64,000 nt of DNA from Macrostomum lignano (GCA_002269645.1 NIVC01003639.1:1-64000); one strand, 5' to 3'; shown: positions 15,323 to 20,047, counted from the stretch's first letter. A program made the numbers and translations. Notes: generated by a model not told the origin, from the letters alone.

Positions 15323-15596
15323 TTATCTACATCTAACTTCTATCTATCTATCTATCTATCTATCTATCTATCTATCTATCTATCTATCTATCTATCTATC
15401 TATCTATCTATCTATCTATCTATCTATCTATCTATCTATCTATCTATCTATCTATCTATCTATCTATCTATCTATCTATCTATCTATCTATCTATCTATC
15501 TATCTATCTATCCAGTTACGAATGTGAACTCCACGCGGTGTCACTAACCAGACCGGTAATTGTTATTCTGTCACTCTCTGGCCGACTGCAGCTTAC
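15323..15596 (+). repeat. Left flank of the 273-bp array: (ATCT)n plus 85-bp block X (15512-15596)
   Basis: Block X is repeated at 19963-20047. Confidence 0.95.
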
Positions 15597-18500
15597 TGTA
15601 GTCTGATTTTCGTTCGGCATGGCTGGTTCCAGCAGGTAGTTCCTCTGGATAAAAGCGCTTACCGCGCCCATTGGCTTTCCAGCTGCCTTAATCGTTTCCG
15701 GTGATCTTGTGTGCGTGCTTTCAGCTTGATTGGCTGCGGCAAGCAAGCTCGAAAGAGCTCGCTTCGCTCGCTCTTTCTCGCTATCTACTATCTATAGCCA
15801 GGACCTGCACCGGAGCGGTTACGAAAATTAGATTTCTCGGTAGTTGCACGTACTCTTTTGCACTACTTGTGTAGTCTGATTTTCGTTCGGCATGGCTGGT
15901 TCCAGCAGGTAGTTCCTCTGGATAAAAGCGCTTACCGCGCCCATTGGCTTTCCAGCTGCCTTAATCGTTTCCGGTGATCTTGTGTGCGTGCTTTCAGCTT
16001 GATTGGCTGCGGCAAGCAAGCTCGAAAGAGCTCGCTTCGCTCGCTCTTTCTCGCTATCTACTATCTATAGCCAGGACCTGCACCGGAGCGGTTACGAAAA
16101 TTAGATTTCTCGGTAGTTGCACGTACTCTTTTGCACTACTTGAGTAGTCTGATTTTCGTTCGGCATGGCTGGTTCCAGCAGGTAGTTCCTCTGGATAAAA
16201 GCGCTTACCGCGCCCATTGGCTTTCCAGCTGCCTTAATCGTTTCCGGTGATCTTGTGTGCGTGCTTTCAGCTTGATTGGCTGCGGCAAGCAAGCTCGAAA
16301 GAGCTCGCTTCGCTCGCTCTTTCTCGCTATCTACTATCTATAGCCAGGACCTGCACCGGAGCGGTTACGAAAATTAGATTTCTCGGTAGTTGCACGTACT
16401 CTTTTGCACTACTTGAGTAGTCTGATTTTCGTTCGGCATGGCTGGTTCCAGCAGGTAGTTCCTCTGGATAAAAGCGCTTACCGCGCCCATTGGCTTTCCA
16501 GCTGCCTTAATCGTTTCCGGTGATCTTGTGTGCGTGCTTTCAGCTTGATTGGCTGCGGCAAGCAAGCTCGAAAGAGCTCGCTTCGCTCGCTCTTTCTCGC
16601 TATCTACTATCTATAGCCAGGACCTGCACCGGAGCGGTTACGAAAATTAGATTTCTCGGTAGTTGCACGTACTCTTTTGCACTACTTGAGTAGTCTGATT
16701 TTCGTTCGGCATGGCTGGTTCCAGCAGGTAGTTCCTCTGGATAAAAGCGCTTACCGCGCCCATTGGCTTTCCAGCTGCCTTAATCGTTTCCGGTGATCTT
16801 GTGTGCGTGCTTTCAGCTTGATTGGCTGCGGCAAGCAAGCTCGAAAGAGCTCGCTTCGCTCGCCCTTTCTCGCTATCTACTATCTATAGCCAGGACCTGC
16901 ACCGGAGCGGTTACGAAAATTAGATTTCTCGGTAGTTGCACGTACTCTTTTGCACTACTTGAGTAGTCTGATTTTCGTTCGGCATGGCTGGTTCCAGCAG
17001 GTAGTTCCTCTGGATAAAAGCGCTTACCGCGCCCATTGGCTTTCCAGCTGCCTTAATCGTTTCCGGTGATCTTGTGTGCGTGCTTTCAGCTTGATTGGCT
17101 GCGGCAAGCAAGCTCGAAAGAGCTCGCTTCGCTCGCTCTTTCTCGCTATCTACTATCTATAGCCAGGACCTGCACCGGAGCGGTTACGAAAATTAGATTT
17201 CTCGGTAGTTGCACGTACTCTTTTGCACTACTTGAGTAGTCTGATTTTCGTTCGGCATGGCTGGTTCCAGCAGGTAGTTCCTCTGGATAAAAGCGCTTAC
17301 CGCGCCCATTGGCTTTCCAGCTGCCTTAATCGTTTCCGGTGATCTGGTGTGCGTGCTTTCAGCTTGATTGGCTGCGGCAAGCAAGCTCGAAAGAGCTCGC
17401 TTCGCTCGCTCTTTCTCGCTATCTACTATCTATAGCCAGGACCTGCACCGGAGCGGTTACGAAAATTAGATTTCTCGGTAGTTGCACGTACTCTTTTGCA
17501 CTACTTGAGTAGTCTGATTTTCGTTCGGCATGGCTGGTTCCAGCAGGTAGTTCCTCTGGATAAAAGCGCTTACCGCGCCCATTGGCTTTCCAGCTGCCTT
17601 AATCGTTTCCGGTGATCTTGTGTGCGTGCTTTCAGCTTGATTGGCTGCGGCAAGCAAGCTCGAAAGAGCTCGCTTCGCTCGCTCTTTCTCGCTATCTACT
17701 ATCTATAGCCAGGACCTGCACCGGAGCGGTTACGAAAATTAGATTTCTCGGTAGTTGCACGTACTCTTTTGCACTACTTGAGTAGTCTGATTTTCGTTCG
17801 GCATGGCTGGTTCCAGCAGGTAGTTCCTCTGGATAAAAGCGCTTACCGCGCCCATTGGCTTTCCAGCTGCCTTAATCGTTTCCGGTGATCTTGTGTGCGT
17901 GCTTTCAGCTTGATTGGCTGCGGCAAGCAAGCTCGAAAGAGCTCGCTTCGCTCGCTCTTTCTCGCTATCTACTATCTATAGCCAGGACCTGCACCGGAGC
18001 GGTTACGAAAATTAGATTTCTCGGTAGTTGCACGTACTCTTTTGCACTACTTGAGTAGTCTGATTTTCGTTCGGCATGGCTGGTTCCAGCAGGTAGTTCC
18101 TCTGGATAAAAGCGCTTACCGCGCCCATTGGCTTTCCAGCTGCCTTAATCGTTTCCGGTGATCTTGTGTGCGTGCTTTCAGCTTGATTGGCTGCGGCAAG
18201 CAAGCTCGAAAGAGCTCGCTTCGCTCGCTCTTTCTCGCTATCTACTATCTATAGCCAGGACCTGCACCGGAGCGGTTACGAAAATTAGATTTCTCGGTAG
18301 TTGCACGTACTCTTTTGCACTACTTGAGTAGTCTGATTTTCGTTCGGCATGGCTGGTTCCAGCAGGTAGTTCCTCTGGATAAAAGCGCTTACCGCGCCCA
18401 TTGGCTTTCCAGCTGCCTTAATCGTTTCCGGTGATCTTGTGTGCGTGCTTTCAGCTTGATTGGCTGCGGCAAGCAAGCTCGAAAGAGCTCGCTTCGCTCG

Positions 18501-19885
18501 CTCTTTCTCGCTATCTACTATCTATAGCCAGGACCTGCACCGGAGCGGTTACGAAAATTAGATTTCTCGGTAGTTGCACGTACTCTTTTGCACTACTTGA
18601 GTAGTCTGATTTTCGTTCGGCATGGCTGGTTCCAGCAGGTAGTTCCTCTGGATAAAAGCGCTTACCGCGCCCATTGGCTTTCCAGCTGCCTTAATCGTTT
18701 CCGGTGATCTTGTGTGCGTGCTTTCAGCTTGATTGGCTGCGGCAAGCAAGCTCGAAAGAGCTCGCTTCGCTCGCTCTTTCTCGCTATCTACTATCTATAG
18801 CCAGGACCTGCACCGGAGCGGTTACGAAAATTAGATTTCTCGGTAGTTGCACGTACTCTTTTGCACTACTTGAGTAGTCTGATTTTCGTTCGGCATGGCT
18901 GGTTCCAGCAGGTAGTTCCTCTGGATAAAAGCGCTTACCGCGCCCATTGGCTTTCCAGCTGCCTTAATCGTTTCCGGTGATCTTGTGTGCGTGCTTTCAG
19001 CTTGATTGGCTGCGGCAAGCAAGCTCGAAAGAGCTCGCTTCGCTCGCTCTTTCTCGCTATCTACTATCTATAGCCAGGACCTGCACCGGAGCGGTTACGA
19101 AAATTAGATTTCTCGGTAGTTGCACGTACTCTTTTGCACTACTTGAGTAGTCTGATTTTCGTTCGGCATGGCTGGTTCCAGCAGGTAGTTCCTCTGGATA
19201 AAAGCGCTTACCGCGCCCATTGGCTTTCCAGCTGCCTTAATCGTTTCCGGTGATCTTGTGTGCGTGCTTTCAGCTTGATTGGCTGCGGCAAGCAAGCTCG
19301 AAAGAGCTCGCTTCGCTCGCTCTTTCTCGCTATCTACTATCTATAGCCAGGACCTGCACCGGAGCGGTTACGAAAATTAGATTTCTCGGTAGTTGCACGT
19401 ACTCTTTTGCACTACTTGAGTAGTCTGATTTTCGTTCGGCATGGCTGGTTCCAGCAGGTAGTTCCTCTGGATAAAAGCGCTTACCGCGCCCATTGGCTTT
19501 CCAGCTGCCTTAATCGTTTCCGGTGATCTTGTGTGCGTGCTTTCAGCTTGATTGGCTGCGGCAAGCAAGCTCGAAAGAGCTCGCTTCGCTCGCTCTTTCT
19601 CGCTATCTACTATCTATAGCCAGGACCTGCACCGGAGCGGTTACGAAAATTAGATTTCTCGGTAGTTGCACGTACTCTTTTGCACTACTTGAGTAGTCTG
19701 ATTTTCGTTCGGCATGGCTGGTTCCAGCAGGTAGTTCCTCTGGATAAAAGCGCTTACCGCGCCCATTGGCTTTCCAGCTGCCTTAATCGTTTCCGGTGAT
19801 CTTGTGTGCGTGCTTTCAGCTTGATTGGCTGCGGCAAGCAAGCTCGAAAGAGCTCGCTTCGCTCGCTCTTTCTCGCTATCTACTA
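15597..19885. repeat. 273-bp tandem array: 16 copies of a ~200-bp block Y alternating with 15 copies of a ~73-bp block Z, nearly identical
   Basis: The ORF track repeats at an exact 273-bp pitch from 15746 to 19841. I noticed only three substitutions (15870, 16864, 17346). Confidence 0.98.
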
Positions 19886-20047
19886 TCTATCTATCTATCT
19901 ATCTATCTATCTATCTATCTATCTATCTATCTATCTATCTATCTATCTATCTATCTATCTATCCAGTTACGAATGTGAACTCCACGCGGTGTCACTAACC
20001 AGACCGGTAATTGTTATTCTGTCACTCTCTGGCCGACTGCAGCTTAC
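19876..20047 (+). repeat. Right flank of the 273-bp array: (ATCT)n plus second copy of block X
   Basis: Direct repeat of the left flank. Confidence 0.95.

Follow-up and report, generated by a model that had tools for sequence, protein, structure and literature searches.

A satellite-like 273-bp tandem array with a legible, putative repair scar upstream of a KChIP-like gene in Macrostomum lignano

The origin of satellite-like arrays in gene-rich DNA is debated, the proposed routes being carriage by transposons, passage through extrachromosomal circular DNA (eccDNA), and template-switch repair or gene conversion. Among the closest described systems are the Rsp-like satellite insertions of Drosophila, which end in a truncated monomer, have one microhomology junction and a variable second junction, sometimes carry a 32-bp duplication of the flank, and were credited by their authors to microhomology-mediated end joining (MMEJ), fork stalling and template switching or microhomology-mediated break-induced replication (FoSTeS/MMBIR), template-switching synthesis-dependent strand annealing (SDSA) or eccDNA (PMC7403614). 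Among non-autonomous Helentrons (HINEs), the left flank of Cg_HINE closes with a microsatellite, mostly of 4-nt units, and the repeats begin after a further 10-500 bp; HINEs possess 11-12-bp subterminal inverted repeats in both flanks, with a palindrome after the 3' one, and neither HINEs nor Helitrons leave a flanking duplication (PMC7492417). According to PMC2543021, PMC11610590 and PMC7403614, satellite repeats also occur on eccDNA, a proposed vehicle for the spread of satellites into euchromatin. Most arrays are too old to retain their junctions. The 273-bp array described here, which lies upstream of a KChIP-like gene in a 64,000-nucleotide stretch of the flatworm Macrostomum lignano genome (GCA_002269645.1, NIVC01003639.1:1-64000; the whole stretch analysed is termed the window), appears young enough to retain both of them. 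One junction has homology to a microsatellite, the other is nearly blunt, and both are legible together with a 165-bp duplication that we read as a repair scar. With a probability of roughly 0.5, this is a young, locus-specific satellite-like array that owes its origin not to a transposase but to DNA replication or repair, namely a template switch and later unequal exchange. It is a known kind of object, unusual for the legibility of its presumed repair scar: one locus in a very repeat-rich genome, in which tandem arrays are common, and a tidy but ordinary case of satellite-like DNA arising. The locus permits a clean test of the routes, in a flatworm lineage with transgenesis in a close relative.

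Tandem Repeats Finder (TRF) located the 273-bp period at 15598-19890, with 15.7 copies, 99% matches, 0% indels and a score of 8565. In-register slicing of the array yielded 15 full units of 273 bp and a terminal partial unit of 198 bp; the copy number is thus a non-integer 15.7, and not 16 as counted in the initial annotation. Each unit is divided here into Y and Z, and Y terminates in CTATCTACTATCTAT (unit positions 184-198). The units are enclosed by two microsatellites (M1 and M2) and two copies of a unique segment (X1 and X2), which lie in turn between a left flank (L) and a right flank (R):

14924-15330, no strand assigned: L, the unique left flank, which is the gene's own upstream region and ends in a degenerate ATCT-like run, TTATCTACATCTAACTTCTATCT
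15331-15512, plus strand: M1, an (ATCT)45.8 microsatellite in which 42 repeats, at 15342-15509, form a pure run
15513-15596, plus strand: X1, an 84-bp unique segment identical to X2
15597, plus strand: T, the single base that separates X1 from the first unit; unit 1 ends in the same base, as a variant (15870)
15598-19890, plus strand: the 273-bp array, defined by TRF and slicing, with Y at unit positions 1-198 and Z at 199-273
19876-19963, plus strand: M2, a (CTAT)22.2 microsatellite with a pure run of 19, the first 15 nt of which are the end of the last Y, CTATCTACTATCTAT
19964-20047, plus strand: X2, the second 84-bp copy, directly followed by the unique right flank R (GCAGTGAAG...)

TRF, slicing and the identity of the bracket all bear out the layout M-X-(YZ)15-Y-M-X that had been proposed from the sequence, except that X is one base shorter than the 85 bp given then, because the next base is T after one copy and G after the other.

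Compared to its consensus, the array (4293 bp) contains exactly three substitutions, 15870 A>T, 16864 T>C and 17346 T>G, which is the number noted at the outset for ~4.3 kb. All three are singletons and none is common to two units, so that the units have a star-like, recent genealogy; the array is 99.93% uniform, and the earlier claim of a very recent amplification agrees with these three singletons. The units are arranged head-to-tail throughout, with stop codons in every reading frame of each of them, and this combination of a non-coding head-to-tail unit with high inter-copy identity is that of a satellite-like array. It is the most uniform long-period array in the window, as had been proposed, but the margin is not as wide as "far more homogeneous" implied, since several short-period arrays reach 96-99% TRF matches. 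No second copy of the unit or of X was found within the window, where self-comparison gives only microsatellite matches for this region. Searches with exact 24-27-mers of the unit and X gave no match in metagenome, prokaryote-genome and viral contigs, collections that are poor for a flatworm repeat and for which a null is expected, and a six-frame probe of the unit against 5.8 billion proteins returned nothing at E <= 1. In addition, local alignments of X, L and R against the unit showed no significant similarity, being no better than shuffles. An old array with eroded edges, in which X would be a diverged Z, or L and R diverged units, was rejected on the same alignments: the best case, L against the unit, reached p = 0.03 in one of eight tests and was not accepted after multiple testing.

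The bracket around the array is identical base for base over 165 bp (15432-15596 = 19883-20047), and a BLAST comparison of the left and right flanks of the array gave E = 2e-89. X1 and X2 match at 84 of 84 positions; the M-X repeats start with ATCT and end with CTTAC, and the base that follows them differs (T vs G). Of the 37 tandem arrays of the window, none has a longer period than the 273-bp array, and no other has a direct repeat in its flanks. At the right junction, the sequence reads ...TCTCGCTATCTACTATCTAT and continues directly as CTATCTAT..., while the same motif within the array is followed by AGCCAGG. The breakpoint between Y and M2 lies inside 8 nt of exact CTATCTAT homology to the microsatellite, or inside 15 nt if one indel is allowed; the microhomology between the end of Y (CTATCTACTATCTAT) and M that had been reported is therefore real, with at least 8 nt of CTATCTAT at this junction. 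By contrast with the right junction, the left one (...GCAGCTTAC-T-GTAGTC..., that is, ...GCTTAC-T-GTAGTC) is nearly blunt, with homology of no more than 1 nt. The sequence after X1 reads TGTAGTCTGATTTTCG, and that after X2, where R begins, reads GCAGTG. The two leftmost junction bases (15597 and 15870) are T, whereas the remaining 14 unit junctions have A, and M2 (22 repeats) is shorter than M1 (46 repeats).

These junctions fit repair or replication better than transposition, judged from the sequence. In the scheme that we prefer, a broken or stalled end carrying 273-bp repeats would have terminated in the unit's own CTATCTACTATCTAT motif and annealed within the (ATCT)n tract of a sister or homologous template. 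The annealed end would then have primed synthesis, by SDSA, break-induced replication (BIR), MMBIR or a FoSTeS-type template switch, which re-copied part of M and all of X before continuing into R, and the opposite end of the repeat block would have been joined to X almost bluntly. Re-entry part-way into the tract would explain why M2 is shorter than M1; the homology junction at Y/M2 and this shorter distal M both speak for the re-entry through the ATCT microsatellite that was put forward earlier. The M-X bracket, which was then regarded as a long pseudo-target-site duplication, is on the evidence of the junctions and the bracket better read as a duplication by repair synthesis. That no other array of the 37 has duplicated flanks suggests a special event and not routine slippage. 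Unequal sister-chromatid exchange or slippage would later have raised the copy number or kept the array homogeneous, leaving an older T variant on the two leftmost units. Homogenisation by unequal exchange is weaker at array edges (PMC11610590), and the T/T/A pattern fits this behaviour, so that the leftmost T/T may be an edge variant spared by homogenisation. From the same pattern it seems that a single pass of copying from a monomeric circle did not produce the array. Two further points favour the scheme, namely a very strong tendency of this genome to form tandem repeats and the negative outcome of the tests of transposon and RNA-gene alternatives given below.

Several points weigh against this scheme. 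No donor copy of the unit was found in the window, and the scheme presupposes L-M-X-R as the ancestral state. End joining gives near-blunt junctions such as that at X1 more typically than MMBIR does, and the event would therefore be a hybrid or a multi-step one. The T/T/A pattern depends on just two bases, and circle integration, or duplication followed by deletion, would give the same end-structure. Taken jointly, the three non-transposon routes (template switching into a donor array; circle integration or rolling-circle copying; M-X duplication with microsatellite-mediated deletion) are nevertheless very probable.

The Rsp-like insertions into 1.688 clusters of the D. simulans clade resemble this locus in being short homogeneous satellite arrays in gene-rich DNA with a truncated terminal monomer, one microhomology junction and one variable junction, some of them with a duplication of the flank at the far end (32 bp); they differ in that the anchor here is a tetranucleotide microsatellite and not another satellite, the duplication is at least 165 bp, and one locus is known (PMC7403614). 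A comparison can also be drawn with human copy-number variants. Lee in 2007 and Hastings in 2009, as cited in PMC7403614, are reported to have described templated insertions and duplications by FoSTeS/MMBIR among these variants. They reportedly share with the present locus a foreign or distant sequence between two local copies, homology at the junction, and a repetitive tract assumed to stall replication, whereas here one junction has no more than 1 nt of homology and the insert is itself a tandem array.

The first alternative is eccDNA, either as a small circle (a 273-bp monomer or a multimer) copied by rolling-circle replication, or as a circle that contained the array together with M-X and integrated by a single, Campbell-type crossover in M-X. 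The near-identical units, all head-to-tail, are what such a source would give, the 15.7 copies would reflect arbitrary entry and exit points, and single-crossover integration of a circle leaves exactly a direct-repeat bracket. Satellites on eccDNA and the rolling-circle model (PMC2543021; PMC11610590) resemble the locus in unit size, which is compatible with small circles, in the near identity of copies, and in a bracket that could release or accept a circle. However, the T/T/A edge variants weigh against a single burst from a monomeric circle, which predicts uniform junction bases in place of T at the two leftmost and A at the other 14, and a circle that already carried M-X merely pushes the question of origin back by one step. 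We consider an eccDNA origin unlikely.

Two ordinary steps could also account for the structure, in which M-X was duplicated nearby as a small segmental duplication, and the material between the ATCT-like motif at the end of Y and the second microsatellite was then deleted. Microsatellite-mediated deletion explains the homology junction at Y/M2 equally well, and segmental duplication does happen here, as indicated by the older nested duplication with 45-bp arrays that adjoins the locus. Nevertheless, more events are needed, all of them very recent given the 84/84 identity of X1 and X2 and the 99.93% uniformity of the array; X followed by Y on the left and X followed by R on the right needs a further breakpoint, and the deleted material has left no trace. 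This sequence of steps seems to us quite unlikely.

That neighbouring duplication lies immediately to the right of the 273-bp locus. The same 45-bp array occurs twice, at 20423-20612 and 25072-25322, 4.65 kb apart and with 97% identity, and encloses two blocks (20703-21937 and 22425-23635) of 16/26-bp AATCCCCCATCCAAAG-type repeats with a mutual identity of ~70%. The pair of arrays and the enclosed blocks together constitute the older nested duplication.

The unique left flank L separates the array from a gene that reads away from it:

14303-14923, minus strand: an intact and intronless KChIP-like gene (neuronal calcium sensor family) of 206 aa, from the list of open reading frames (ORFs), with Pfam matches to EF-hand_7, EF-hand_6 and EF-hand_1; the array lies upstream of it

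Comparison of the encoded protein with the PDB gave KChIP4 as the best match, followed by KChIP2, KChIP1 and calsenilin (E = 4e-45 to 6e-41), in agreement with the KChIP identity assigned to it before. Its start codon lies 675 bp from the first unit, close to the ~0.7 kb estimated earlier, and 408 bp from M1. The closest database relatives are two Macrostomum lignano proteins, with 75% and 66% identity, while exact-sequence look-ups with the KChIP-like protein and with two ORFs of the unit gave no match. The two M. lignano loci encoding these relatives align with the present one in coding sequence only, at 80% and 72% nucleotide identity, and have no homologue of the unit, X, L or R and no comparable array. 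Downstream of the gene, a (GACA)114 tract (13748-14205) starts 98 bp beyond the stop codon, and the KChIP-like gene is thus boxed in by long tetranucleotide tracts on both sides.

Most simply, the array would be expected to be a neutral insertion of unstable copy number, ~0.7 kb upstream of where the KChIP-like coding sequence starts, and recombination between the direct M-X repeats could excise it. A copy-number-variable promoter module had been proposed instead; the units would then be promoter or enhancer modules and the array a regulator of the KChIP-like gene, which we regard, from the motifs, as very unlikely. Every unit does carry two ATTGG motifs and one TTCCGG on the plus strand, which correspond on the gene strand to the two CCAAT boxes and one CCGGAA of the initial annotation, the former of NF-Y type and the latter ETS-like. 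The sequence CAGCCAATCA agrees with the NF-Y consensus; on the gene strand, a TTTTAT follows the proximal CCAAT box at ~15-20 nt, and CCAAT is ~8 times as dense in the unit as in the window background. The native upstream region likewise has two CCAAT boxes on the gene strand, at -103 and -190 within L, and this ~400-bp region of the gene's own is intact. On the other hand, the probability of at least two CCAAT on one strand of 273 bp is ~0.025, a figure that comes from a post hoc search and is a weak signal; the region upstream of the gene shows no similarity to the unit, no comparable array occurs at the paralogous M. lignano loci, and a 4-kb array of this kind is too young to show constraint. 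Tandem spacer-promoter repeats upstream of genes are found in ribosomal DNA (rDNA) spacers. These repeats, like promoter-proximal variable-number tandem repeats and macrosatellites, resemble the locus as arrays of promoter-like motifs that lie upstream in the gene's orientation and probably vary in copy number, but the unit here was not copied from the gene's own promoter. A composite of the ideas above, in which a 273-nt circle was copied ~16 times by rolling-circle replication and captured at a break via the ATCT microsatellite, so that the CCAAT/ETS stack became a copy-number-variable promoter or enhancer switchable by M-X excision, would be very improbable.

The initial annotation had proposed a rolling-circle (Helitron- or Helentron-like) or a template-switch amplification; on the first of these readings, the array would be the repeat core of a HINE, like DINE-1 or Cg_HINE, or a Helitron concatemer. 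Two palindromic elements of the unit bear on this reading:

15751-15777 (unit 1), plus strand: hairpin GAAAGAGC-N11-GCTCTTTC, which recurs every 273 bp
15723-15749, plus strand: second palindrome AGCTTGATTG-N7-CAAGCAAGCT, which includes one CCAAT box and has a DNA fold of -8.8 kcal/mol (z = -3.2)

The first of these is the hairpin on which the earlier proposal had relied; it is present in each unit, where it is the sole perfect hairpin of at least 6 bp, but its DNA fold of -8.3 kcal/mol is no better than those of dinucleotide shuffles (z = -0.6). A canonical Helitron starts with 5'-TC, ends with a 16-20-nt hairpin ~10-12 nt before a terminal CTRR, and inserts between a host A and T. In the unit, no CTRR lies within 30 nt downstream of the perfect hairpin on the plus strand; on the minus strand the nearest one is CTGA, 27-30 nt from the hairpin, and the next base is A. 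The order 5'-TC...hairpin-N10-12-CTRR-3' was not found in any phase of the unit. Moreover, the proposed TC start, preceded by A, would be at unit position ~187, but the array starts from position 1, in (T)GTAGTC, and stops at position 198, inside CTATCTACTATCTAT; since this start matches neither edge, the array edges are not element termini. Canonical Helitron head-to-tail arrays thus resemble the locus in their head-to-tail repeats with a hairpin in each unit, and differ in the TC...hairpin-CTRR organisation, the A/T host junction and the proposed termini, none of which coincides with what is seen here.

The likeness to HINEs is closer on the left side, where (ATCT)46, the 84-bp X and the 273-bp array follow in the order microsatellite, spacer and repeats of the left half of Cg_HINE (PMC7492417), a likeness of layout only. 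In general, HINEs (DINE-1, DINE-TR1, Cg_HINE and pearl; PMC7492417) share with this locus a 4-nt microsatellite, a short spacer, satellite-like repeats of a few hundred bp or less, and palindromes near or within the repeats. The right side differs, as a palindrome-bearing right flank of 60 bp is lacking after the array, where M-X stands instead. L (14924-15330) and R (20048-20450) were compared for inverted matches of 10-13 nt, and the observed and expected counts (0 vs 0.2, 1 vs 1.0, 0 vs 0.4 and 3 vs 1.7) are at chance level. Compared with HINEs (PMC7492417), the array is therefore without above-chance subterminal inverted repeats or a right-flank module, is much longer at 15.7 copies, and has a duplicated M-X bracket without counterpart in them; at least 165 bp are duplicated in the flanks, whereas HINEs and Helitrons duplicate none. 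The lack of a second copy within the window and the null six-frame probe among 5.8 billion proteins may also count against a HINE or Helitron, and no Rep/helicase ORF was detected in the window, either among ORFs of 120 aa or more or in Pfam scans. Given these results, a HINE or Helitron origin is very unlikely.

Other classes of element were also considered. The unit has a good RNA fold (z = -3.8 and -3.1). A 12-nt inverted repeat, TCTGATTTTCGT / ACGAAAATTAGA, with 11 of 12 positions matching, closes most of each unit (15598-15870 in the first) into one long RNA stem; its chance probability is roughly estimated at ~0.1, and it gives no evidence of a miniature inverted-repeat transposable element (MITE). 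A search of 14000-21000 with Rfam 15 was empty at E <= 1, as was one of the whole window at gathering score, and ARAGORN found no transfer RNA (tRNA). Despite the good RNA fold, these nulls give no support to a ribozyme or retrozyme satellite or to an array of small nuclear RNA (snRNA), 5S or other RNA genes. A spliced-leader gene array, in which each unit would hold an exon that ends in ATG before a GT donor, was rejected as far as the M. lignano spliced leader (PMC8629364) can serve as query: the window lacks its 3' half even when up to 3 mismatches are allowed, and the GGCATG of the unit is followed by GC, not by GTAAG. A long terminal repeat (LTR) element with M-X as its LTR was likewise discarded, as the termini are ATCT...CTTAC instead of TG...CA, the left repeat is followed by TGTAGTCTGATTTTCG where a primer-binding site is expected, ARAGORN found no tRNA, and the interior is purely tandem repeat.

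Finally, an assembly artefact, by over-expansion of the repeat or by a false M-X duplication from haplotype overlap, would account for the perfect periodicity and for three singletons as consensus errors, but we deem it scarcely probable, because the sequence runs through without Ns or a contig break, a single long read easily covers 4.3 kb, haplotype overlap usually gives false duplications of kilobases at contig joins and not of 165 bp, and M1 and M2 differ in length as a real event predicts.

Beyond this locus, tandem repeats make up 41% of the window (26.4 kb) in the 37 arrays, with periods of 4 to 273 bp, and the genes occupy short gaps between them. This is in keeping with the 15% share of simple and tandem repeats reported for M. 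lignano genome-wide (PMC5730564). A 24/190-bp array lies between two long (TGTC)n tracts (48769-49439, 50018-50671 and 51420-52076), superficially an M-array-M arrangement, the spacers of which are not duplicated. A TNFAIP8-like ORF (27377-28027, minus strand; Pfam E = 2e-41) ends in the last 5 bp of a 47-bp x35 array (25729-27381), which abuts the stop codon; its protein has no close relative in the protein collection searched. Three ORF segments at 37782-40265 (plus strand) are the apparent exons of a glycerophosphodiester phosphodiesterase gene, of which the first has a Pfam GDPD match, the third a weak one and the middle segment no Pfam match; a 29-bp minisatellite (38167-38597) occupies the gap after the first exon. 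A large protocadherin-like exon (44148-46493, minus strand) encodes 781 aa with 4 cadherin domains. At 54163-54864 on the plus strand, a 233-aa ORF without a Pfam match has a cysteine/histidine-rich tail, which we take to be reminiscent of the ORFs of non-LTR retrotransposons.

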